Positions 1,292 to 49,857 of a stretch of 64,000 nucleotides of DNA are shown in pieces. Position 1 is the first letter of the stretch. Each line of letters begins with the position of its first letter. The notes beneath the pieces were generated by a model, which saw nothing but the letters and a program-made list of their open reading frames with translations, was not told where the DNA came from and did not search any database. The position numbers and the translations under genes were made by a program. This DNA is from Ophelia neglecta (taxonomy: Eukaryota), in contig OZ260664.1 of NCBI GenBank assembly GCA_965285935.1, positions 53,444,001 to 53,508,000 of the forward strand, given 5' to 3'.

Positions 1292-3133
1292 CTATAAAAA
1301 CGATCATATTTAAGGCCATAAAAAGCGTGCCTAAAGTCATCGTCAGCTGTATGACGCCATCACCATGATGGGGGGGATGAAGGTGACGCCATCGCGGACA
1401 TATTAATACAGAAGCGCAGTTGAAATGCGAGCTAGAATCGATGGCTGAGTGATGCTAATAATTATAAACAATACAAAAACTGAAAACAGTCAGAGAAAAA
1501 ATTAATACATTTATACTTAACTTATACAAATTCACTAGAGTAATGATTAACATACATTAACATTAAGTTTTAATTAAACTAAACTAAATATATAATATTT
1601 TGTGGTCAGGCTTTTAATCGAGAGAGAGAAAAACTTTTTAATTTTCAATGCAAATGAAATTATATATATATAATATTTAAATATAACTAGTTTCCTATTG
1701 GAAGTTAGCCCCGACCCTTCAATGATCGAAGTCGCTTTTTTCGTTCACGCGCTCATTGGGATTTCTTGGCCTGGACAACCAGTGTCTTTTAGACAGCAGT
1801 CAATATCGGCCCACGGCTTACTCTAGAAACATTGATAATCTTGGCCTAGGGCAGTCTTTTTAAAGGTATAAAATAAATGTACCCCTATTAGGTCTATTTT
1901 GATAACCCCCACCCTGAGCCTTGTCCCACGTCTAATCAGTGGGTCCAGATCTTTGTGAACAGAGTGTAGTGTGTCCGAATTGCGATGCTGGATACATAGC
2001 CATTGCTGAACGTGAGGATTAGACCACTGAACTATAATGCCGAATCCATTGATTGCGTCTACCAGATAAAACATCACAGGCAAACGAAATCGGAGGCAAA
2101 CCTCCGGCTACTGATATACACCCAGCGGACATAGCTGTGATTGATAATCGGAAGGCGTCCGTATTTCGGGACAACAAAAGAAGCTTCTAAGAATAATATA
2201 AGACGAACTTTCACCAAGGAAAAAACTTCAGGGAGATTAACCTATCGCCGTTGACTTCAGATTGAGTTTGATATATGACTGGTTTGAACCCTTTCGTCCA
2301 AACTAGATATTTTCTAGATATAAACTTCAGGTTATTGTAACGGCTACTTTTACATGTCGTCTTAACATCCACTTCAATTAAGTAACCCCCCCCCCCCCAA
2401 AAAATTAGAAAATGTAATATTTAAAATATATTCCTATACATAAAGAGCTATGTACTGATTTGTGTTTGTCTGCTTACATGTAATTACAATTTCTAATTAA
2501 TTGCCTGGATCAAATAACCAATGCTCTGAGATCACTTTTGAGCCTGGGACTTGCTAATTTCTATAGATTCGAAACCAAACCTATTGAACATCAGTGTGAC
2601 GACAAGGCCAAACATATTCTGACAAAATGAATAATAATGACATATTTTCTGACATAGGCTACTTATAAGTGCTCTGGTTAACAACGACGATATAATAAAT
2701 ATCATTGTCTAAACATTGACTGTAGTGCTACCGTATTACAGCACATTAATAGATATAAATGTACGATGATCAAAAACGCAGCGCTCATTGTATTTGTTGG
2801 TAATAAAATACGACTGAATAGAGTAGGTCAATTTGCACTTTTCAAATGAAACAATATATTTTAAATGGTAAAGAGACACATGAGAAGCGTTTCAAGACTA
2901 AATAAAAGATATATCAATAAGTTTTTATCTGCCAATACGCTACAAGTATCCATAATCTTATGTACAAAAATGAAATTGTTTAAGGATACTTGATCACAAA
3001 ATTTTGATTTAAATTTCTTGCTGATGCAATCGGCAATGAATAGCTCGTTAAAATATCATATTTTCCTTCGGAAAATGGCCCGACAGCCTCAGTGATGTAA
3101 CCTTGTAAGAGTAATTGTCTGACCCGGGCCTAC

Positions 3134-11385: not shown

Positions 11386-14300
11386 GGTCTTTTTGCGTTT
11401 TGAAAAAACCTTAAGAAGAAAACATCTATATTGTAAATTTTGGCGAGTTGAAACATAAGTGCTGTTTTCTTACTCGCAGTTTAATTGAGGAAATATATTT
11501 GTTGATTGACGTGTACGGATACCCGGGCAAGATGTTTCAGTCACATGGCATGATGGACTAGTGTTTTTTTTCGAAAATTGCCAACAGGGACGGAACCTAT
11601 GGGCTTATATGACCTAAAATAAGTCACAAATTGACCTTTACTCGTGAACATCAAATTCTTGTGTTGCTAGTAACGCATATAGATCGCCACAGTTATACGA
11701 TTTCCAAATGAACCCAGCAAATCTAGTTAGACCCAACAAATAATGTTATGTTATCAGTTCCCTTACAAATGAATATACATGTACCTAAATGGACAACACA
11801 AGAGACAGTTGTAAAACAGTTTATATCTTGGTCTACACTTGTGTGGCATTAGCTCTATACCCCTTGATGGTCATGGTTTACCTACTGCCAAAGATGGGTC
11901 AGTATCTATCAACGCATATACAATATGTATTGAGGTCCTTCACTAGTACTGGCAGAAACACGTGGGATTTCTTAGAATGCGCCTTTTTGCCTCAAATTGG
12001 AACCGATCAACAACCATGTACAAGTGACCGTTCAGTGTTATGTTGAAGTACTATTAACCGGTCAAGGTCTAGTACTATTGACTAGTCAAAAGTACTTTAC
12101 TATTGACCGATGCATTGAAAACTACTGAAAGGGTTATGAACATGATCATTACTTTTTAGGCAAACATTTATATAACTCATACATAAAGGAAACCAAAGAA
12201 TTATAGCGAGGACGTAATTATGATAAAATGCTCACAGTTTCAGACAGCTATGTAATAATATCCACTTGTCACTGAACTGTAAGGTTGACCAATTTTGAAG
12301 TGTTTCTGCACACTCTGCCAGTGAAACAGCCCATCGGCATTGCGAAGTATGGAATGCTTTAACTGTCTTGTCTAATATTTTGCCTGAATGTATATCGGAG
12401 TAATCTAATTCATGTTCTGAACCATTTATACAACAAGAGCAAATAAGACGGGGTTTAATAATTTGCGTAGGACACATTTCCGTTTGTCTAAGAATGGACC
12501 TAGCTAAGTTCGCACGTGATATAAAACAGCAAATGAGGAAATACTCGAATTTCTTAGAAGAACAGGATACTATTTGTTGCGGATGACTAGTAGGCCTATG
12601 CATTATAAATTACAAGTTACGATGTTGCTAACGCTGTCGTCTAGATTTTTGTAAACGGTATGCAACAATTCATAATAAATAAATTATGTGACGTAACGCG
12701 AGTATTCCTAGGATTTACCGAGGCCTATGTGAGGTATGCAAAATCATCACATGACTCCGGAACCAAATTGATCTGACATATCGCGCATGCTAGTATTGCG
12801 TCCAATTTTAACATTGCATCTTGTAAATGTTTGAGATATAATTAATCCTGATTTTTAATTACAAGTGTTTCTTAGGTCCAATTTAAGCTTTTTTTCCTAG
12901 TCTCCTTCCTATAAAATGTATAAAATACAATAGTGTCAGACATGCACCGTTGAAATATTTACAGAACAAGTTGGCCAACCCGCTGATCTAAGGGCCAGAA
13001 GTTTGGCCCTGTAAGACGAGTCTCCAATTCTGAAAGCTGTTCTGCGCAACGGAACGCTCTTGAAAAGAGAATCAATGTTACTAAGATAGCGATGCAGCTG
13101 CTTAAGGCATCTGCTGGTTCTTACTCAAGTAGACCTGCTTACCATTGAAACAGCCGAGACGTGTCTTGATGCAAAATTTCCGCCATTAAAACATATCAAT
13201 TACCAATATTGACTGGTATAAATCGCAGACGGCAAGGGCCGTAGAAGTTCTCAGGTTAATGTGATATGTTTGCGGAGGCTCTTATATTGATCGTCTGCTA
13301 CAAGAAATGCCAAACAATCCTTAGCAACCGTCGGTGGGCTCGGTTACCGCAAATTGACACTGTTCTAAAGTTCAACTTAGTTGTCAGAATTGTAGAACCA
13401 CGGTAAATATCAGATGGGTTGAACCCAAGCCTCTAGCTCAGTCACATGCAAGAGTTGACTTCTCGAATGACGTGTTTTTTCGGTGGTAAAATATTTGCAG
13501 CACATGAAGATGAAAAATATTGGTTGCGTCTAAACACAAGATGGTTTAAATAATCATTTCAAGCTTTATTTGGCATCTTTGATTTATATATTTAATGAGA
13601 AATACTTTCGATAATACGAGACTTCCGATGTGGCATGTGAATTCCTTGGCGAAACGCAATAAATTATGTTACAACATCTCTCGTGTAGCAGATAAGGTAA
13701 AGAACAAATTAAAGTCTGTGATAAATGAACCAAATATAATTTTTTTACAAGGAGCACATCACACTTTGTTTAATTTATTGAAAAAAAAACTACGATTTCC
13801 ACAAAAATCTATGAATTCTATCATCGCAGAGCTCTCTTCTTGTATTAAAACCTGTTATGATAAACTTGTCCACATCCATTCGTCTTAGTGCCTTGGTTTT
13901 ATATTACATTCCTCCCATGGTTAATCACTCTAGTTTCGTCAATATTGTTTACAACAATTACATTAGTAGCACTGTTAATTAACTAAAAGGAAAGAAAACT
14001 GAGATCATCACAGTCGGAGCGAAAGAACGGGGGAGGGAGAAGGGGGGGGGGGGCGACAGGGACTTAGGATAGAAAGAAGGTGAAAAATTGGGGAATAGTT
14101 GATAGAGTGTGGTCAATTAAAACTGTTACAGCTATTTGCGGATATCAACCTTGTTAGAAACTACAGGTCCTAGGTGACCACTAGCCACGTTCTAATATAA
14201 TAGATCTGAATAGAGAAAGATGACGCTCAGATCAGTCACCAAACCCAATAAGGTAAGCTACTGAAATCAAATTCTCTAATCTGCCAAAGTTGATTAAAAT

Positions 14301-16267
14301 CAATATCGCACCTTCCTTGTATTGCCTTACCGCGCACATAACAGTAACGTAGGGGTCTGAACGAAGTGCACTGATAATTAATAATATATATCGGAATATA
14401 ATTGCAGCCATTACCACCAGTATAAGATCTACTCATATCCTGGCCAATCGGTGCACAGACTACTCACACCTTTCAAAGATATGTTCCGAATATGATCACC
14501 TGCATCAGCAATCTCAGTCGTAGCTGATTAAGTGGGTGAATAGAAACCAAAATTAAACATTACCAATGGGTTAATATTGAATTAGGATTTAGATGAGTTC
14601 TGAAATGTAAAGGGAGGTTATGATAACGGAAGAATATCATGTCATTCTATAAAATTATACAATTACCCCAAGGCACTGCTCGACGGGGAAACAGGATATA
14701 ATAACTGCTTACTATACATTATATCATTTGGTTTATGTGCTACACAATTGCTTGCTGATTAATAAATATAATACAAGCGAACACAATATGCTTATTGCTC
14801 ATGTCAGCATTCGCGTGCATATATGCATTACCTCATGTTTTCCCAAAAACTGACATTAAATATTTTTATATATATATTTATGACATTCACACTTCAAGTT
14901 CGGTTAATGTAAAATTGAGTCGTCACCCACCGAAATAGTCATCATGTCGTATCTGCTTTAATAAGAACTTTGGTAAATTTGTGTCGTTGAGGTAGGGTAG
15001 TGAAATTATATTTGCGTCTCTGCACGGAAACTCTGGTGCGAGTAAATGTTGCAGAAAATTTTCTCCTTTGTAAAGAAAAAGTCTACTGGTTTCAAAAGTA
15101 TAAACGTGTGGCATACAAAATGCACTTCCTGAATCAATCTGCACAGTCGAAAGTGACACGTCCAATTTTTAACATTTTCAAGCTTGATATATTATATAGT
15201 TATTTATTTACTGGCGGGTAAAGTTCGTCTACAACAAACACCCGTGTTTAACATGTGTAACTGAACGTTCCACACCCTACACTGTACAATAAGTAAATCA
15301 GACGTTTCAGATATCACAAAGCAATTAAGTTAGAGAGAACTGCATAAAACAGCAACCGTCATAAGTGCAAGTATGCGTAAGTATGGTATTTCATTATACT
15401 CGGAGTAATTCCAATCGAGTAAGTTATTAGTAGGGCATGAGAAAACGTGCATGTGGATACATTCGTCATATATAAATTCATTTTCTAAGATGAGAGATTA
15501 AGTTTCTGTAATAATGAAGCAAAATTCCAGTTTATAAAAAGACGAATATTTCGTGAACAAGCAATGGATGATAAGTAGGAATTATCGTACACATCGTTAT
15601 GTAAAATAGCATCTTAATAGGATTTAAAATTGCTCTAAGCTCCTATAGGTGTCGAATTCTAAATTAATAACAAGTTACTTCTCTATCTAGTACATTAGTG
15701 ACCCATTTATGCCTGGAAATAAAGGCCTACTTAGGCCTATACTAGGCCCTACCTGTCCGTTATAATATAATAGGATATGTGTAATATTCTCATTGTGTTC
15801 ATATGACCATTTTTATATGTTATTATTATATATGTATTGTGTCTCTAAGTTTTCACTGTATGTACTTGATCATAAAATTGTAACTCCTCGGAAAGCGGGA
15901 GATAAATAAAGTTTAGAAGATCTTGGGAATTGGCTCGAACTTGGGATGATGAAATCATTCGGCGTTGTGAATTGAATTAGGCCTACTATTAAATTAGCGC
16001 ATCATTGATGATATATTATGACACTAATTCGGAATCCCTGGCCACTAAAAATGACAAGTTTGTCCTTTTGTACACCATTCCAATTGAAACGACGACATCC
16101 TTACAAGTGCGTCATCACTACTTCCGGAACTCGCATAATTGACAGCCTATCCAAGTGGATAAATTTGATAGCTAACAAGAAGCGGAGTCTCGCCACATAT
16201 CTTTAAAGATCACCAACTGAAAATTATAAATATAATAAGAAATACTGAAATTGTTCTATAATCTTAC

Positions 16268-16336
16268 CTTTTCCTCTTTTCCCCCAATTTCCACATAAAT
16301 TATTCTGGAGGTATCAAGCGACGAGCCGTTACCCAT
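16268..16336 (-). CDS. PDE9A: PDE9 coding exon 1 (MGNGSSLDTSRIIYVEIGGKEEK)
   Basis: ATG at 16336, 69 nt, donor AAG|GTAAGA. Matches the recalled vertebrate PDE9A N-terminus [23 protein letters not shown] in length and motif; the MGxxxS myristoylation consensus is retained. Confidence 0.93.
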
Positions 16337-16549
16337 CTTCTGTTCACGAATAAACGGAAACGAATATAAATGTGTTTAGTCGGATCGAGTCTTAGCTACT
16401 TGAAATCCGTATACGTAGAGGTCAAAGCATTGATATCATCCCCTTGTCCCAAGAACAATAGAATTAACTACACATTATCGTCTCTGCTTGTCATCTTTCA
16501 CCTGTAATGTGATCCTGTCTCAGCGGGGCTAAGGTCCAGTTTTTTGTGT

Positions 16550-17020
16550 CTGACAGTAGCGACTGTACACATAAAAATGATTTTCGACTGATTTACGTAG
16601 TCCTAATTGGAGTCGGTTTCCGGGAGTCGGATGAATCGTGAATTGAGAATGTCCGATAGTTTTGTTAATCTTGGCGACAAAGGGCGGTTTTGTCATTGAT
16701 TGCTCAAGACGCCTCCTTCCTACAAGTAGATTTTTAGGCTACCACATCATTTTCTCATTTTCTCTTTCGCGTCTGCCGCTTGCCTATCGTCTGGGAAGTC
16801 TACGTCGTTTGCGCTCGATTCGAAGTGAATGTGCCACTATAACCTTTATTGGCAGCCAGAAGATGAGGTAGCGGGCGCGCAGATGCCAGCGGCGTTTACG
16901 GGCATCATACCTGGTTTGTCACCGAGGTTTTACCTGTATGCTCCAAACGCCGCACAGGCTGGTGTCATTCATGGACAAAACGCGCCGATGGCAAGAAGTT
17001 GTTGATCCGTATCGCCATGG
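16550..17020 (-). promoter_or_regulatory. Probable PDE9 promoter / 5'UTR region
   Basis: Locally CpG- and GC-rich stretch (e.g. gcgggcgcgc, cagcggcg) just upstream of the PDE9 ATG exon in an AT-rich background. TSS not determinable. Confidence 0.4.
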
Positions 17021-20000
17021 AAACCATGTAGACAAACCTTTATTCCCCGAAGGAAATTAAGGGAAATTAGTATGGGTATTAGTCATTAAGGAGTATCCAC
17101 TGCTTTATTGTCATCTATTTATTCTCTTAGTGATACCTTAGATATTTTGATCACACGCACTTCAACTGCATCATCTTCGACACTAATTGGTGAACATATT
17201 TTATGAATATATAATTACCAGTTATATATCGAAGGTTTCCATGTGTGGACGTACGTACTGAAGTATTAGGCCTAAACATTGAAAAGGCCGCACCAGGGTT
17301 TTCCGGCACTTTTAAGGGTCAATGAGAGATAAGCACGGATAGGCCTACCGAGGTAGAATATATAACTTGATTCATTTGTCGATTTTGTTATTAGATTAGT
17401 ATAGGGCTTATCTTAGTGAAAACGGCTCAAAGGCGCTGAACATATTGTATAAAAATTAAATCAATTCATAACACTGTACAATAAAAATTACATACAAACG
17501 CTACATTGAACGACACAAAAAAAAAAGAAAATAAACTAAATGGTCTATATAAAAGCAATAAAAAACAATGTTAAACTAATCAAAATTTAAAGATTTTTTA
17601 CATTCACAGATTGAGCATTGCATTGAGCAGGCCATGAAAATTTGTTTTTAATAGGCCTAAACTATGTGGAAAACTAGCTACCCGACATAATAAAACTATG
17701 AGAATGGGCTTAACCTCACTTTGGCAGCTAAAATTCGCCAATAGGTAGAGCTTCCTGTCTGAGCGGATAAATGCACAGCCTGCGCTCAGGTATTAATTAA
17801 TTTGCTAATATACCCACATTAGACTTGGCTTTTCAATACTGGACCAGCTATTTTTCTGTGCATTATTACTTTCAATGGCTCGTGATCACACTCACCAAAA
17901 TACATAGAAGTGATCCTTGTTTTGTTGTCCCTAAAAGACAAAGTAAATGTGGCAATCCAGCGCTGAAAGTACTTTGTAGTTTTTCATAAGTCTAACCCGG
18001 CTGACGAAAACTCAAGCGTCTGTGTACAGAACGAAATGCTTGGTAAGTAGTGTGTAGCTGTGAATAACAGGCATGAAGGGAACATTCGTTTAGTTCCAAT
18101 CCATACATCATTCTCAAGGCAAATATCTATGTTATAAATGGTGAAAAATTCCCACCACGATGAGAGCAACGACTTGCATGCCATACGCTGTTTTCCCACA
18201 CCTCCGCATGTAAACACAACCACGTGCGCTTCACTTTTTACTAGCCCGGTGTATATGAAAACACATAAAATAGTTCGCCACATATGTCACAATTGTCAAA
18301 CACATTACCACCTGTAGTGATCAGAAAATGACCATACTTGTGTGCATAATTGCAAATTTGTCCACAGATAACCTTGAAATCAGAAAAAAGGGAAAAATAT
18401 TATGTTAATTTAATGCCGGGACTATAGCTTCGTCACATGGAGCCACACATATAACCATTGATACCTAAATGCACTTTAATGCCTATATATTCGGGAATTA
18501 TAAACCTATGAAAAAAAATACCATATAGGCCTACCGGAGCGCAAAATCGCTTATAGCCATAAATTTTCAATACTTTGTACATTAGAAGCCTAGCTATACC
18601 CTCTATTGAATTGTCATAACTTTTTGAGACAAGTGTTTGCTTCTTCTCGACAAATTGACCATGGACCAATGGTTGGCTCTTATGTATAAACCAGGTCAAT
18701 CATAAGCCAATCAATCGAATGGGTCCTTTAATACGCAAAAAACAGGATCACGTCAGGGGCGTCACGGAAAGTGAATATTTATGCAATGAAAGTGATAAGC
18801 AGATTATGCATAGAATATAGAATATGTGGTTTAATATTGTTTAATTTTAAATTGGTTGAACCTTTTAATTGAAAGTCCTTTTAGTCTCATTTCCGCAATA
18901 CCACTTCTCACATGCTGACAGACTTCTTTTTTATTCCACAAGAGGGTGACTGATTTCAAGAACAGTTTGCAAAAACCAGAAGAAATAAGGTACCTGGTGT
19001 ATTTTTTCCTTCTCTCAGTCAATAACTCTAATAGTTACGAACAATTTCATGCCATTCTAATTTCCATAGGAAACTTTCTGCACGAGCGGAAGCATAGTGA
19101 GTGCCGCCAATAGCCTTATAAGTACATACTACTAAAGGCCTACTGCTTACTGTCATGGGTTCGCTGGTTCATCATAACTTTAGGGCATGGATTATACATG
19201 AGCTTCGATTTCGAGTTAGGCAATGCATTATGACGCTGATACATATACAGATAATTATATAAAAGCAATCTGTGAACTTCCTACATTGGTAAATACGATT
19301 TAATGATGACTTCATTAATTTGCAGTCCCCACCTGTTCATTATAGCCACTTTCACATTCCTCGATGCCGAGATACGCAAATCAGAAATCAGAAATGGCAT
19401 TTCCTCACTTGCTGGTGATACATATAGGAATTGCTTAGTCATGTAGGCTATAACGGTTTATGGACATGCATGGCTCGTAGGCTTATCTATATACCCTGGG
19501 AATAGTCGCCTTTCTAGGTAACTGGTTTATTTTCTCTTTGACATTTTCTTAGAGTGTTTTCGTGGTAAACATGAGATATATAATAATCTGCTGATGAATC
19601 AAGTACTGGAGCAGTCGCGGCACCTGCTCTTTAATGGTTCCTTTATCAGTTTAGCAGTTTTACGTAATTTGCATTGAATTTTATAATACATTTTCCGAAA
19701 CCAACAAAAACGACTTCTGTTGTCGCAAAAAGTCCCTTGCGGAAATTACAACATAATAATTACTGTTCCCATTTAAAAAGCTGTTTTTTTCTCTAAAATT
19801 TGTTTTTGCTCTAACACTGGTTGGTATTGTCATCAAAATTTAATTACACAATTCACATTGGCCTATAAATCAACATACAAATTCCGTCTGAATTAAACAG
19901 ATAACTTATATTAAACGGATTGAAACATTTTTCAAGTCAGCATCTCCTAGTATACAGTATACTTGTAATTCATTTTCAGAGTTTCATGGATATAAAGTTG

Positions 20001-27310: not shown

Positions 27311-30029
27311 GAACGTTTTTAAAAGTGCGACGTTATAACTATACTTTTCGCGGATAAATACAGTGCCAGTTTGAAAAGTTATGTAAGCCTAACCATGTTA
27401 GGGAATATGCGATCGAGTGTTGGCTTAATTCTGTGGACACAATTATTTTTAAATATTGTTTTTTATGAATACTTAGCAACGGGTTTTTTTTTGGGGGGGG
27501 GGGGGGTATTTTATGGAGAGTTTAATATAGAGTCGAATAGGATAACCTTATTGTATAATACGATCATGCTGAAGTGCGCTGCTTTGTGGATATAGGCATT
27601 TTCAGAGTGCAAAATCAGACGACACTTCTGTCTGATTGAATCGCTGGAAGTTTTTGTTCCAAAAGGTGGCCAAGTTTTCCCAGTAGTATATCGAAATAAT
27701 TTATACATTGGCATATTCCTGACATTGTTGCATATTTTTGACGATCGATCTTCTAGTTTTCCAAATCTGGCAAGTTTAATTATCAAAAGTAGTGCAACAG
27801 ATTGTCACTTTTTGGCTTTCTTCTCGTTACCATTCGTTGCCCATTGCGCTTCTGTAAGCGGCTGCAGGTGAACACTGCGCATCATGTCGTACTGCTGGGG
27901 GGCCGATGATGACAAAAAAGTCCCAGTATTGGGCGGGAGGTTGGAAACAATCGACCTGGGAGGATAATTGTAATGGCGAGCGACTAAGGCCTGCCTTTAT
28001 TGCTGTCTTGGTTGAAAGGCTAGGGTTCTGGAAATGTTGAGCTAAACTTAGCCCAGTTGAGGTTAATAGCAAGCATGCAGTGCATTGTGGAGGAGAAATA
28101 AACCAATTTCCTCTTCAGAATGAAGAATTTTTTTATAGCTTTCATTAGAGACGGGCTTATTGAGTAAATCAGAGCCTTAGCCTGCAATTTATAAACGAGC
28201 TTAGTCCATCGCAGACACTTATATTGGGTATTTAACGAAATCATGTGTTTCCCTGTATCGCCGAAGAACAACAAACCACCTTAGAAGAGAGAAAATCAGA
28301 GCCATTGCAAGTATCACTGCATTACCCTGCTCTCTTACATGGAAAGGCGTTGTACTGTTATCCTAGCACGTTAACTGGTTGTTTAAGTTATCGCCACGAG
28401 AATTTTCCAACGTAATATTACATGTAAGAGCGGATGTTTGTTATCAACAAGTTGTATTCAGCGTTTCTTCCAGCTGTCTTTCGATGAAATATCCCTTTCG
28501 CGAGTTGACTATGGCAACAGTTGACATTTCGAGGAGTTGGCTTTCTAGTAGTTGGAGAAGTCACGAACCCGTGGCAGCCTTGGCCGGTCATTTGTACTAT
28601 AGGGCAACGTCAAGTAACTTCAGGGATTGGGTGCTATCATGTAAAATTACATGCCATGGTTTACCGGATGGTCAAATCAATTGAGAATGGGCGCCTACTA
28701 GAATTTGTACATTTGGATACCAACTGGTTAATCGTTCATGGAATTATTGAAAACTAAATATGTATAATGGCGTATCTGTGCTTCTCAATTTTTCAATTCG
28801 CTTCATAACATGACTAGTCCGAATAGTGCGAAATGCAAACTTGGAGACGGCTAACCATACACTAGGCCTCATATGTTTGAATTGAATGCCCGGGCTTTAA
28901 TGATAGCTCCAGAAAATATTATCTGCAGGATATGATAGACATGCCATTCGAGCCCTTGCAGCCAATGTTACTCTATCAGAATCGTACTGTACTTTAATTA
29001 GGTTCTCTCAGGTATTCTGCATTTGTCTTGAAGCGCAGACAGTAGTTAGTCTTGCTAAATTTGTCATGTGGCCTTCTTGACCATATCAATGTTTAGTGAA
29101 GCAAATCAATTTCGAATCATTTCATTTTGACAGGGCAATACATGTATATAATTAAAGGAGGAGCGAGGTCCGCTTTCGTCGGTCAAGTGCGACTGATTGG
29201 CAATTAGTAAAGCCATTCTGATCGGATACAGGTGTGTCGAATAATCCGTTTTCAGGTAGCGCTGTAGTAGTATGCACGGCGCTCCCTGTCATCATTATAA
29301 CTGAACTGAAGAAACGTATATTATATATGGCTAAGAGATATTGTTCTTCCCATTAAGGAAGCTAAAATTACGCTTGGCATCGGTAGTAGTGTGGAAATAC
29401 TTAAAGACTAAACTACTGTGTAGTCCAATCCAGTTTGGAAAAAGCTACGTGTGATTAAGCACAGTACATACAATGCACAAACTGCTTAGCATTCTAACAA
29501 CAGCAGAATTTTTTGGCTGTGACAATAATTGAGTTACTATACCATAATATCCATTTCCATCTCCGGTCCATTTTAGCGCCGTCTACATAGTTCCAAAAAT
29601 GACTATTTCTGTCCGTTGGCCTTTCATAAAAACTATACTTACTATGATGTGTTTGTAACAGATTTATAGGCCTACCAGCTCATTACATTCACCCGTAGGA
29701 TCTCCCTTCGTGTAAGGGGCCCAGCTGCCCCCCCCCCCTGCCCCCTCTTGTATTATATAATTTAATATGATCTTGAAATCAGTAAACCAGAATCATTGTA
29801 AAAAGACCCTGGTTTTACATCACTCAACTTTTATGGAAGCTTATATTATCTGCGCCTAGCCATAAAAACTATTCTCCTGTCAACGTTAACTGCAATTTTG
29901 TTTAAGAATTCCTAATTTCTGCATGTCACCATACCATAAAGGTTCCATATATCAGAGGTGTATTGTCCATTGGTCCTTTTTCTGTTTGCATTTAGTTTGT
30001 GCCACAGCAACCGCTAAAAAAATTGCATG

Positions 30030-33059: not shown

Positions 33060-36000
33060 ATAGTCGACTTTTGGTTAAGCGACGTTTGGTTTCGACATAA
33101 TATTATACCATGGACTCAATAAATATTTCATGAAAACTTATCTCCTATTTAGTGGGAATGTTACGTGTAACATATCGGCTACAAGTCCGGCTGCAGTGGA
33201 TAATATGCATAAAAACATTACGATGCAGGCCTTTAGCATATAATTTGCCGATATTGGGTTTCACTGGAGGCAGCTTTGAATAATTTCGGCTGAAGAGGTA
33301 TTCTTAATTTGCTTCAGTGAGGTATTCTTGAGCAGTGTGCTCCTGCTGAAATTCCTAAATGTGTATCACCAATTGGCTGTGATATAAAGAAAAACAAAAC
33401 ATTTCGCTTGAACACAGATATATGTTGTTTAAATAACAATATTAAAGATTGTAAATTCACCTATAAAGGTATTGACACTGTGTTTGATATTATTTAGGAG
33501 ATTTAATTGCCACATTTGACTAAAAAGGTGGTTTCTTTTATACACCAATAGGCCTACACTAAGATTATCATGCTTACTTTGGAATTAAATGGAAAAGATA
33601 CTACTTAAAATGGACTGATTTTGCTTTTTGGCTTCGGAGATTTTCTTTAATGAAACCCTTAGGCAAGTTGTACGGTATCTCACGGAATGTGGATTGCGCA
33701 TTGCAGTATATATAGAAGATGGCATACTTTTGGTCAAACCTTGTTTTGCAAAGGATTACAGGGACTTGCTGATTCATACAACGTAAGTCCTTGGCTTTGC
33801 AATAAAAATTCTCAGAAAAATGTCCTTATATTTATTACTCAGAAAGAATTTATTGTCTAATCAGTCAATTCATTAGGGGAGATAACCAGCCCTGAATTTC
33901 TATTTCACACAAACGCCACTGCTAGGAAATTGACGCGGGTTTTCTGGCACATGTATTGCTCTCACCAAAGCTATACTTCCAGGAAAATTGCTCCTTAGGA
34001 ACATAATTATATAAATTGCTTGCCTCTCGTGAGAGATGGTAGTCTATTCTCACGATCGTTAAAGACGTCATATCCGATTTAAACTGGTGGCTTTCTGCTT
34101 TGGATTCATGGAATGGTAAACCCGTAATCAAACATACCTTCGACAGTCAGGTATGTTGTGATAGAGCTAGTTTTGGCTGGAGGGCCATATGTGGATGTTT
34201 GAAGACGTCGGATGTATGGAACAAGCAAATTTCAACAAGCACTCAAACTTTCATGAGTTGATGGCTGTTATGTTGGCTATCAAATCATTTGGCAAAATTT
34301 GCAGAGAAAATCCATCCAGGTACTTAGTGGTAACATTGTAACAGTGGCTTGTTTAAGCCATCTCAGGGGACCACAGTCCAAGTTAACGGATCTGACGAAG
34401 GTCATATGTAGCGAGTTGCCAAACCTTAATGTGGAGCTTACCACAAAACAATTGGCTCCATGCGGACAGGCTCAGTCGCTTTGAGTCGCTTACGAATGGA
34501 AGCTACATCCGGGACATTTCAAATATTTAGACACGTTTTTTTAGCGCATTCACATGCGACATATTGGCATCCCTGGTGACACATCATATAGGCCTACCAC
34601 AATGCAACAGCTATTAAATGGACCTATTGACAGCAGGAAACAATGCCCTGGCTCAGTCAGATTGGGCAAATTTCAAGGACTTCGTCAGTTGTCCTTTCAA
34701 ACTCATTTAGAAAGTCTTGGACGACAAAGAACAACACCAACCTTTAGCAACAATAATCGCGCCCAGGTGGTCAGTTCATACATGTTACAACCGGTTTCAA
34801 AGACTGTCAGTTGATCCACCACTGCACCTACCAACCCCTGACTCATCAGTTACTCTACTGGGCAATTGCATTCCAGAACCCAGAAAGAATCCAAAATGGA
34901 TGTAGAATATCTGAGAAGAAAAAACTCAACAGGCTAGGGTGCGTGCCTCCAGGTAAAACTGCACAAATTGCTGAATTTCACTCTTTATTATGTGACTCAT
35001 CTGTTCGACCAAGGTCTCTACTCGACAGTGCGGAGGTGACCCTTACACACCTGCATTCGGCATGGGATATGGACATAATTACTCATGACGAGAATCTAAA
35101 ACATTTGTCGGTAGCCTTGATTAAGTCGGGAACCCAAGTGGCACGCTGCAAGACCACTATGATGCCAATTGACCCATTTAACAAACTGTTCCTGAAATGG
35201 CCAAGGAAAGAAGTGCTTTGCGTCAGACATCTCCGTTTAAAGTGCATAATTTTTCTGGCATTAGCCCTCATGCTACATCCTCTGGACAATGCACCACATG
35301 CTCAGGTACGTGACCGAGAAATAGGACTATCACACGCAATCGTCTTGTCTGTGGACCAGTTGTCATTCCCAGGTGACGGATCGCTCGTCATCACTGTTTA
35401 CGGCTTTTAAAACGATACACTTCAGGATGGTTTTAGCTACATATACCAGGAATTATTAAGATAGATAAGATAAGAATTTTATTATTGCGCATATCGCTAC
35501 AGCAATGTCGCACAAAAGACAACGTAACATCAAGACAACTAACTTAAAGTAGTGTGATAATAGGTTGTGTTAGAAAATACTCGAGTCTTATAATTCATGA
35601 AAAAAAAGTTAAATGTAATTTGTAAAATTATTGTCTAAACTTTATATGTAATACGATTATGCCTAATTGAACGGCGTCATGATACAGTTTACGACGGTGC
35701 GTAATTCTGTCTATATATAATATGCCTTCAAAGTCCATGACTAATGGCGATTACTGTCGACCGAGCGGTTTACCTTAAAGGCTTTATCAATGAAGATACA
35801 CAAATTGTTCATTATCCTCGGGTCCTGACAGTTGAGCAGTTCGATGACGTTCGCCGCGCTTCTGTGCTGGATGTATTTCGCTGGTAAGTAACGGCGTCTA
35901 AGCACATCCAGAGGTCTACATTCTACCAGAAAATGTACCTCGTCGTCGACACATCTGCATACTTCACAGAGTCGATCATGGCGCTCCACGCCGTTCCATG

Positions 36001-39680: not shown

Positions 39681-42600
39681 AAACGAAAATGCGGCGTGAC
39701 AAGGGGTTTCCAGAAATGTGTAGTGTCATTGCACTAAAGGTCTCTATGGACCGATGTATGCCCACATTTTTAAAGATACTATGTTAACATTAGATAAACA
39801 AGTTTTACAGCTAAGCGGCAATAGGCTTAAATCTTGGTTGTCATTTGTATGTAGTCAAGGTGTTATCGTGTTTTCTTGTTTACAGTTAATAAGTGCAATA
39901 ACCTGATACTTGATTCCGCCCGGAAATAGCAATTCTTGCTAATTAACTGTATTTATTTCTTTCCAAAAGCTAGAAACCCACAAGGCCGAAAACGGATGTC
40001 ACTGAAAGCTGGCTTCTCCCTGGACATTGTGCGTGGCAAAGCAAATTGCCCGGCTCAATTCCAATGTAAATGTATTGGGCCTTTACTTCATTTTAAAAAC
40101 GTCATATTGCTCCTCATAAAATATCTAAGGCAATACCGTCCAATAATTATGTGCTTGGCACAAGACTCAAAGCCCTTACTAAAACTATTGTGCAACGGTC
40201 AATGCGGGATTTTATATTATTATGCGACAAGAGCAATGTTAATACAATCGGCGATCTCGCAGCATTGACCTATCTCTGGACGCACAACAATTCTGAATGC
40301 TGCATGGACCGCTGCACAACGGTGGCAACGTTTTCATAAAGTCGTTGGTTTCAATAGTTATTGCCTGTACCCTATCAACTCACGAATTCATCAGGAAGAC
40401 CACATTTTGTTGATGAATTGTAGCAATTAAAACATAAATATTGTTGTTTTAAAATTGCCTTTTAAATTGGGACACCTAATTATCAATTTGAACACCCGCA
40501 TTTAATATGGAACTACCCTAATATAAAAATCAATCATTCATCAATTCGTTAAGTCCCCTGGATTATACCAGATACCAAAATTTTGTATATAGAACGGCTT
40601 CTTTGGTCCAGTTTTTATAAATCAAAGTGCTGAAGACACTGTCCTTTCTGCTCACTGGATTGGTCGACACAGAGTAAGGCAGACAGTTGCCCTAACTGTT
40701 CACCTTGTGAATGGCTGAAAAAAACTTGCTTTCTAGGCTTGTACCACTTTCTGCAGTGTAGCACTGCCAACATCTAAGAGCGCTCGTAGACAGTTGGGGA
40801 GTATTGTCTCAGGTTTCCACCTGTGGAGTGTACATACCGTTATCAATACAGCTAATTATTCGACATGACAATAATACTTTCGACTCCTTTATCCTTGATA
40901 TATAACCGACTCTCGGGTGTCTATTTACAGCCCACGACCTCTAACCTCGTGCATTACTTCATGAACACTGACTATGTCCAGTGACAAGCGCAGCATAGAT
41001 TAGAGAGTCAAATGATGTAATAATGGTGTCTGCTAAAATAACGATAAGTAAGCGGTTAAAAGTTCACACAGGACATGAATCTGACTTAATACATATGTAA
41101 AAACAATATGAAACACTTAATTATTACCCTTTAACTATATCCAGGGTATGGATCATTTTTTGGAAGCCCGCCTCAGGGTTGGACTTCCCATCGCACAAAC
41201 CAAACCACAATATATCTTTGGAGCTCTGCCTTACCCCTGATTGGAATGTAAATCACTACTCATTCAGCTTGATGTAGGAAAGCCACAGAAGCGTTGGCTA
41301 CTATGTTGAACGCTGTGTCAGATGATCGTAAGACACCTACAGTGAATGAAGGAGGGAGTTCGAGGCCAACAAACATCTCTTAATGCCATTAGGACGTTAT
41401 TACATAATACATTCACTGTATTAGGGACAGTGTCCACCCTACATAAAATAAGAATGCCGCTTCAATTAAACAGGGCCCCCTGCCGGAATTTACTCTAACC
41501 CGGCTAATTTATATACGCACTCACCCCAACTGATACAGGAGCAGTATTAGCCTAATTTAGGCAGTCTGTATACATTATATACTATATGTGAGTCATCAGA
41601 AAAAAATCAGCTGACGCTGAGATGGTCGCTCTAATGGTGCAAAGTATCGTTCAATATAAATTGTATAACCATTCCCCTTTGCTCTCAATTGTGAAAATCC
41701 CCACGATTAGCACTTGGACTCTTCCAGTCGTGCACAATCTCATGATTTCATTTGGTGAAAGAGACTGGTCCACAGCCCCTGTAGGCCTATAAATGACATG
41801 TTTTCATGTGCTTTCGCTTATCAATCATTAGATCACAACTGAAATTCAACTTTTTCTCCATTTGCTAGTTATATTTTAAACTTTCGTTTCGTCATGAGTA
41901 CTCAAAAGCTAATTTTTCTGTTATTATTCGGTTGGTAACACACACTTGGTGCATCAGACTTCTGGTTTCTTTCACTTGAAATCTATTATTCTTTTCAACA
42001 AAGTTAGTCACAGCAACTAATCTTTTGCCAGTATAGTAATCACCTGGAGAGGGTTGGTAAACATAATCTTTTTGACTTCAAACATTATTTTCTTTGCTCG
42101 CCTGAGCAAAAGTAATGTTCGTGTCTGTGGGTGTAGGTGTATGTCTGTGAACAAAACAACTGAAAAACTACTTGTCCGAGTTTTATCAAATTGGTGAGAA
42201 TGTAGTGACCAGTGAGTCATTCAATCAATTAAGGTGTGTCCGATGTACTTTCAAATACCAGAGACTGAACCATATGAAAAATTCAAATGCTCGTTTCTAA
42301 CCGGTTTATGGTCCGATTTCAAAAAGGAAGAAACCAAATATATGGTCAGTTAGGGTACTTTCAGTCGAAAAACTAAGGCTTAACCTATTGTTTAGAAGAT
42401 AGTCACTGCGCCATTTTGTTAACCTCAAAAGCTTATATTTCGGCTGTTTATTGTCCGATTTGAAAAAGAAAAACCCTCTATAGCAAGTCAGGAGTACAAT
42501 TGATCGATACATGAAATACATGAATAGCATGAGTTCCATATATGATTGGTCATGGTGTAAGCTAGACCACTTTTAATGCTCATGTCTCAACTGATAGTAC

Positions 42601-49300: not shown

Positions 49301-49857
49301 ATAGTCCTATAGGCCTAAGTAAAAAAATCAATCATATACTGCGTGAAGATATAGGCCTATAAGAAAAAATGCGTCAACGTGCAAAAATGGTCTCGAGGGA
49401 CTTGGAAAAATCGCTCGGATGCCTCGATCGGCGAGCTTACACAGGTATGCCGCACCGAAAAATACCATAGATACATTTCTGCTACCTGTCGCCACAACAA
49501 TGAAACTCGTATATGCACTGAAAAAAAGACACTTGTTTCCCCAGTGCTTAGCTATAATCTACGATGAAATTCAAAGAGCTTCTCACCAAGGCGAGAGTGT
49601 ATTAGTTTATAGCAATGGCCAAGAAAATTTCCTGATTAGAGTGGACAGTTCAAAGGAACATTTGACGCCAGGGTCTTCGCTCCCATCAATTTATATACGT
49701 ATGCCTTAACCAACCTGGGCTGAACTCGGAAAAAATACACTTTGACCAATTCATATAAAAGTATGGTAGACCAACTTTTATTTGTCTTCAGAATAATCCA
49801 AGGACACCAAAAAGCCCTTTGATGACAATATATACAGGCTGCCGTATAATTGTCCGT

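Follow-up and report, generated by a model that had tools for sequence, protein, structure and literature searches.

Uniform six-base, TA-duplicating insertions across the genome of Ophelia neglecta and their possible origin in transposon excision

We have analysed a stretch of 64,000 nucleotides from the genome of Ophelia neglecta (assembly GCA_965285935.1, contig OZ260664.1, positions 53,444,001 to 53,508,000; hereafter the window, which is free of N), in which a decayed retroelement copy carries two occurrences of the octamer TAGGCCTA. The copy lies at 33306–35451 on the forward strand, is interrupted by many stops and frameshifts, and belongs to a dispersed, multi-copy family (66–77% identical) with copies on C1, C2, C5, and C8 at 66–86% identity. 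A preliminary description of this DNA had read it as a DIRS relic, and the translations quoted there are indeed present, D*KGGFFYTPIGLH*DYHAYFG in one frame and DILASLVTHHIGLPQCNS in another. A Pfam search of seven short open fragments of the relic gave no match, while the downstream open reading frame (ORF) at 34811–35410 (199 aa) has feature-level neighbours with Phage_int_SAM_1 / Phage_integrase, i.e., tyrosine-recombinase N-terminal domains, which is a weak lead. The putative assignment to DIRS is weakly supported, by the motif reading of that description, the dispersed family, and this recombinase lead.

The two octamers occupy 33549–33556, in the reverse transcriptase-like block of the relic, and 34589–34596, in its downstream block. 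In both, a hexamer had been described as inserted after a TA, and this is borne out by the sister copies on other chromosomes, which carry a single TA. At the first site the window reads CCAATAGGCCTACAC, and the sister copy on C2 (L005/L002) reads CCAAT------ACGC, with exactly 6 bp missing; a copy on C1 has a larger deletion at that point. At the second site the window reads ATATAGGCCTAC against AAA------TAC in the sister copies on C2 (L002) and C8 (L003), again with exactly 6 bp missing. Since the sister copies carry one TA and lack exactly six bases, each relic site once had a single TA, at which exactly 6 bp were inserted: TA has become TA-GGCC-TA, with 6 bp gained on balance. The same is seen at a third site in a separate, unrelated locus (L035:2143), whose paralog reads GAGTA------ATG with a 6-bp gap. 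Overall, a single exact 6-bp gap opposite one TA is found at all three testable sites (four informative paralog comparisons), while the same test on ten control 8-mers gives such a gap in only 1 of 44 cases (Fisher p = 2.5e-4). At all three sites the TA is thus duplicated at the insertion and single in the ancestral sequence, as in a Tc1/mariner footprint. In the paralog alignments of a 318-kb sample of the genome (0.04% of the total), TA-GGCC-TA accounts for 3 of ~19 independent 6-bp insertions and for 3 of the 4 that duplicate TA, so that GGCC does stand out among 6-bp insertions at TA sites, though on few insertions. For brevity, these octamers are called scars below.

One may ask whether the two hexamers were inherited within the DIRS family or are there by chance. 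Inheritance of this kind does occur in the genome, since seven copies of another transposon family (L076) share the same stacked scars, but in the DIRS family the hexamer is absent from the sister on C2 at the first site and from those on C2 and C8 at the second, which refutes inheritance for both. Chance fares no better: TAGGCCTA is found 13 times in the window where 0.64 is expected from dinucleotide-preserving shuffles, and none of 100 shuffles reaches 13. This explanation can be virtually discounted.

The excess extends far beyond the window. The window contains GGCC 146 times, in 13 cases with TA on both sides; 114 kb of unrelated loci hold 14 TAGGCCTA sites, and the 318-kb sample holds 35 against 3.7 expected. 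In the whole 762-Mb genome, the counts are 69,501 for TAGGCCTA and 3,592 for its reversed control word ATCCGGAT, i.e., a 19-fold difference and about one site per 11 kb, and part of this genome-wide count lies in tandem repeats. No other TA-N4-TA word deviates as strongly from expectation (z = 16), and the octamer is among the top over-represented 8-mers of the sample when repeat-derived words are set aside. The process is therefore genome-wide and, as its insertions are of 6 bp, frame-preserving, just as had been proposed. In the literature, our search found TAGGCCTA only as primer or oligonucleotide sequence.

The share in tandem repeats brings up another explanation, according to which TAGGCCTA would be a functional palindromic protein-binding site whose abundance comes from selection or from repeat spread, for instance in enhancer arrays of the long terminal repeat (LTR) kind or in satellites. 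Several tandem repeats, with units of 40, 26, and roughly 18/36 bp, do contain the motif, one copy to each unit, and some of these arrays lie in the direct repeats that belong to a ~4.3-kb LTR-like element. However, the 35 sites of the sample are all dispersed singletons, whose flanks share nothing beyond purine-TA...TA-pyrimidine; clean 6-bp insertions at TA are found in dead relics and paralogous DNA; and selection leaves both the TA duplication and the stacking in 6-bp steps (see below) unexplained. Judging from these sequence patterns, a binding site appears decidedly unlikely as the source. As to the repeats themselves, each direct repeat of the LTR-like element opens, after a purine-rich tract, with 10–17 copies of the 26-bp TAGGCCTA unit. 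This element and the separate 40-bp and 18/36-bp satellites are located at L080–L083 (C1:2.81 Mb and 3.09 Mb), L077, and L079. The word GGCCTATTTAAC, which was considered as a possible transposon terminus, is such a 26-bp tandem unit within LTR-like direct repeats and was rejected.

The scars are also very uniform. For the pattern TAGG-N(k)-CCTA, k = 0 stands out (35 vs 2.8); for k from 1 to 40 the 318-kb sample shows no enrichment apart from a small excess of TAGGCCCTA, and TAGGCTA, TAGCCTA, and TAGGTA are all at expectation. When words of the form TA-G(n)-C(m)-TA are counted, (2,2) gives 35, (2,3) and (3,2) together give 5, and (3,3) gives 0. Among the 16 palindromic words TA-XYY'X'-TA, besides the microsatellite TATATATA, clear enrichment is seen only for TAGGCCTA (35 vs 3.7) and TACATGTA (32 vs ~10), and TACTAGTA is at ~2-fold with 10 sites.

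Another line of evidence is the sequence context of the scars. The base before TA is A in 49%, G in 29%, T in 16%, and C in 7% of the scar half-sites (n = 70). A resident miniature inverted-repeat transposable element (MITE) that starts with CAGTG has the corresponding values 57%, 30%, 7.5%, and 5% at 93 insertion sites. Accordingly, a purine precedes TA at 77% of scar half-sites, against 52% of all TA sites and 87% of CAGTG MITE insertions. The scar context differs from that of all TA sites (p = 4.5e-4) and does not differ from that of the CAGTG MITE (p = 0.36). In target-site preference, then, the scars agree with a TA-specific element.

In addition, scars can be stacked on one another in 6-bp steps. 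At L076:1735–1760 we have read TACATG-TAGGCC-TACATG-TACATG-TA, where TAGGCCTA stands among CATG scars, and the double scar TAGGCCTAGGCCTA has 896 strand matches in the genome, at ~680 dispersed sites, against roughly 10–20 expected from composition. The second word of these stacks, TACATGTA, is found 117,701 times genome-wide, 7 of them in the window, and shows a ~3-fold excess in the sample; its stacks TACATG-TACATG-TA lie at L076:1735–1760 and 3106–3119. Tc1 is known to leave a TACATGTA-type scar, and the Minos footprint is also of 6 bp and preserves the frame by adding 6. Since the resident TA elements of this genome have CAG...CTG ends between the flanking TAs, retention of two bases per end predicts exactly TACATGTA, which fits its being the 2+2 scar of these elements. 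Overall, then, the TAGGCCTA sites are the product of a real and highly non-random insertion process, with 6-bp insertions that duplicate TA, a genome-wide excess, a transposon-like target context, and stacking with CATG scars.

How could such insertions arise? A cut-and-paste element of the Tc1/mariner/pogo group whose ends read 5'-GG...CC-3' would insert at TA and duplicate it. On excision, the cuts on the non-transferred strands would fall a few bases within the element and leave short 3' overhangs on the flanks, and end-joining would then seal TA+GG to CC+TA. Alternatively, the ends may be GGCC and the cut may lie 4 nt inside, in which case the two self-complementary GGCC overhangs could re-anneal; this would also explain the uniformity of the scars. 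Tc1/mariner elements are known to excise with such a cut of the non-transferred strand shortly within the element, after which end-joining leaves the first or last 2–4 transposon bases between the duplicated TAs, and the footprint of Sleeping Beauty is TAC(A/T)GTA (PMC6943129). The scars here resemble such footprints in several respects: a duplicated TA surrounds a few constant bases, the +6 gain preserves the frame, the purine-TA-pyrimidine context is shared, and a CATG scar coexists with them. On the other hand, their GG/CC inner bases match no element found in the sample, they are far more uniform than is usual for end-joining products, and their scale (about one per 11 kb) is uncommon. The kind of event is a known one, while the scale and uniformity are unusual. 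Considering all this, the reading we favour, and hold to be somewhat probable, is that the TAGGCCTA scars are Tc1/mariner-type excision footprints of a GG...CC-ended TA element that was not found in the sample. Excision would then be the source of the scars, and the element termini would be the source of GG and CC.

The preliminary description had likewise seen here the scar of a TA-targeting element with GG...CC ends. The TA duplication and the target-site signature agree with this; the donor was found neither in 318 kb nor among five element families. Several results in fact weigh against the excision reading, and the missing donor comes first. Scans of the 318 kb for a terminal inverted repeat (TIR) element with TA-GG...CC-TA junctions, as had been predicted, gave none beyond an internal match, and no recurrent word follows TA-GG in this sample. 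All five Tc1/pogo-type families whose ends could be read start with CAG, so that in the 318 kb and these families the inner bases of the scar are the termini of no TA-specific element. No GG-ended copy of the CAGTG MITE was seen among the 100 TA-flanked ends listed (of ~10,000), of which 96 start with CA, 2 with AA, 1 with TA, and 1 with CT, and no mariner-type transposase was found at E <= 1e-8. Besides the donor, end-joining usually gives less uniform products than these, polarisation against paralogs was possible at three sites only, and the series of matching empty, filled, and scarred alleles that had been predicted did not appear, as neither a filled nor an empty allele was seen (three runs from one sample, five scars). 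Because donor and allele series are both missing, we infer the excision mechanism rather than observe it. It should be added that a donor family of fewer than ~2,000 copies would escape a 318-kb sample, and that the scars of a cut-and-paste element can far outnumber its copies.

The five resident families are as follows. The first, pogo-like and 2,741 bp long, carries a 409-aa ORF and has the end TA followed by CAGTGGATCC; it lies at L074:877–3621 and at L073 (reverse strand), and since its twin is 99.96% identical, it was probably active recently. A Tc1-like element ends in ...GCCACTG before TA, and a young 3.7-kb family ends in ...CATAACTG before TA. A 1.1-kb TIR element starts with CAGCCC after TA. 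The CAGTG MITE, 178 bp long, starts with CAGTGAAACCTGC after TA and has ~10,000 exact ends; its copies are sometimes arranged head-to-tail, 180 bp apart (loci L043, L052, L014, L015, L028, and L030).

One abundant element with GG...CC ends does exist, namely a ~460-bp MITE with the termini GGCATGAAGGG...CCCTTAATCCC, for which a first look gave at least 490 candidates and of which the window holds a copy at 18070–18484. The scars might therefore be supposed to come from this MITE. But its target duplication is of 4 bp, as the perfect pairs TAAA, TGGA, TGAA, and TACT that flank single copies show, and just 34 of 100 copies have a TA in front of their 5' end. With GGCC, a 4-bp duplication would lengthen the site by 8 bp, whereas the three polarised sites gained 6, and this leads us to reject the MITE as the predicted donor. 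Moreover, around GGCC no four-base direct repeat other than TATA is enriched. Its being the source is extremely improbable. In the consensus of this MITE, a gapped-pattern search found no scar. Its longer termini are GGCATGAAGGGCGCATTAGG...CTAATGGCCCCTTAATCCC, its target duplication is loosely T-N-N-A, and its copies are 70–90% alike; beside the window copy, it has been located at L033:1427–1964 and in L010–L038. A TAGTAGTA-like word often stands 10–40 bp upstream of its 5' end, and the 9-mers TAAGTAGTA and TAGTAAGTA are 11–14-fold enriched in the sample, which is itself biased to the flanks of this MITE.

The PIF/Harbinger/Tourist elements, whose ends often begin with GGCC or GGGC, have target duplications of TAA or TTA. 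Their GG(C)C termini are similar to the inner bases of the scars, but the net gain here fits a 2-bp duplication, and a PIF/Harbinger footprint was rejected, as the ancestral sequences of the two relic scars (CCAATACGC and AAATACC) contain neither TAA nor TTA.

If no GG-ended donor is present in the sequence examined, the GG could also come from the host. A template-independent polymerase or telomerase might add GG to the trimmed 3' ends after excision of any TA element, including those with CAG ends. The shared target context of the scars and the resident MITE would agree with this, and so would the existence of minor TA-G(n)-C(m)-TA variants. Yet the CAG-ended elements already have an enriched scar of their own, TACATGTA, and exactly GG would be needed on both sides nearly always, given the 35 vs 5 vs 0 counted above. 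With TTAGGG as the telomere repeat, telomerase would be expected to add GGG, and the addition of GG by telomerase was therefore rejected, since the repeat is not TTAGG. We regard host addition as unlikely. The TTAGGG arrays are seen at C1:148,969,430–148,976,663, ~0.5 Mb from the end of the chromosome-scale contig C1, in blocks ~2.3 kb apart, and TTAGG arrays are nearly absent from the genome.

Another way to account for about 40,000–70,000 very uniform scars with no donor found is to suppose that they mark germline-limited elements which are excised in development, with an assembly that is presumably somatic and holds the scars but no donors. Among the contig matches listed, however (three runs), no contig diverges at a scar; the motif mutates like ordinary DNA; a young transposon family inherits stacked scars; and, for an animal, such a system has a very low prior probability. 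We judge it highly improbable. A broader version, in which the ~40,000–70,000 scars were left by TA-bounded elements now gone from the assembled DNA, either through somatic removal in each generation or because the family was purged by near-complete excision, is very unlikely as well. The internal eliminated sequences of ciliates, which descend from Tc1/mariner-like elements, offer a known parallel: they are TA-bounded as well, and in both cases somatic DNA would lack the elements. But their precise excision leaves one TA, while a 6-bp scar is left here.

Returning to the excision reading, the scars themselves appear to be old. The one-mismatch neighbours of TAGGCCTA show a modest excess, which consists mostly of G/C transitions and corresponds to a mean divergence of ~6% with a wide error; this decay pattern is consistent with old, neutrally mutating scars. 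The stacked scars at L076 are common to six other copies (seven in all) of a young family with 96–99% identity, and the stack therefore predates the spread of this family. In other words, transposon copies can inherit scars. We further compared assembled contigs, rather than raw reads, from the three runs with positions 12580–18560 of the window, and found no 6-bp presence/absence difference at the five scars between 15732 and 17652. One single-nucleotide polymorphism falls within a motif (15738 T>A). The two polymorphic 6-bp indels in 12580–18560 are of unrelated sequence. The contigs also skip 86 bp at 15161–15248 (with 5 bases instead) and 43 bp at 15354–15398, and have ~40 single-base differences from the assembly in 5.3 kb; all of these are probably haplotype differences.

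Several of the other scars of the window lie close together. Six of them fall within 2.8 kb. This cluster opens at 15732–15739, where the contigs read TAGGCCAA owing to the T>A change, and a variant, TAGGCCCTA, follows at 15743–15751, only 3 bases past this scar. The cluster continues at 15978–15985 and 17267–17274, both without a 6-bp difference in the contigs, at 17340–17347, which is 73 bp past the preceding one, at 17652–17659, and at 18526–18533, which is 42 bp past the 3' end of the ~460-bp MITE copy. A second close pair, at 49310–49317 and 49352–49359, is 42 bp apart. Clusters and close pairs of this kind are what local hopping would give. The remaining copies are found at 12591–12598, 29667–29674, and 41782–41789. 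No paralog exists in the genome for the sites at 12591, 29667, and 49310/49352, which lie in single-copy DNA.

Genome-wide scars of transposon excision have been described in grasses (PMC4423477). As there, the excision of DNA transposons would be a measurable genome-wide source of small insertions; here, in contrast, one octamer dominates, and the genome is that of an animal with TTAGGG telomeres. If the TAGGCCTA sites are excision scars, an animal genome has received tens of thousands of identical, in-frame two-codon insertions from one transposon family. They would then form a countable record of past cut-and-paste activity beyond what copy numbers tell, a definite source of indels that keep genes in frame, and, through their visible clusters and stacks, a marker for local hopping. 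As the donor was not found, they may point to the loss of a family, to an unusual repair reaction, or to something stranger.

Two further features of base composition were observed in this genome. Runs of poly-G/poly-C of 8–20 bases occur about once per 4 kb (~80 in 300 kb of loci), and no common flank was seen among them; in the window they lie at 2386, 14042, 24791, 27493, 29728, 30430, and 44975. The most over-represented 8-mer is GGGGGGGG, with 450 strand counts against ~3 expected.

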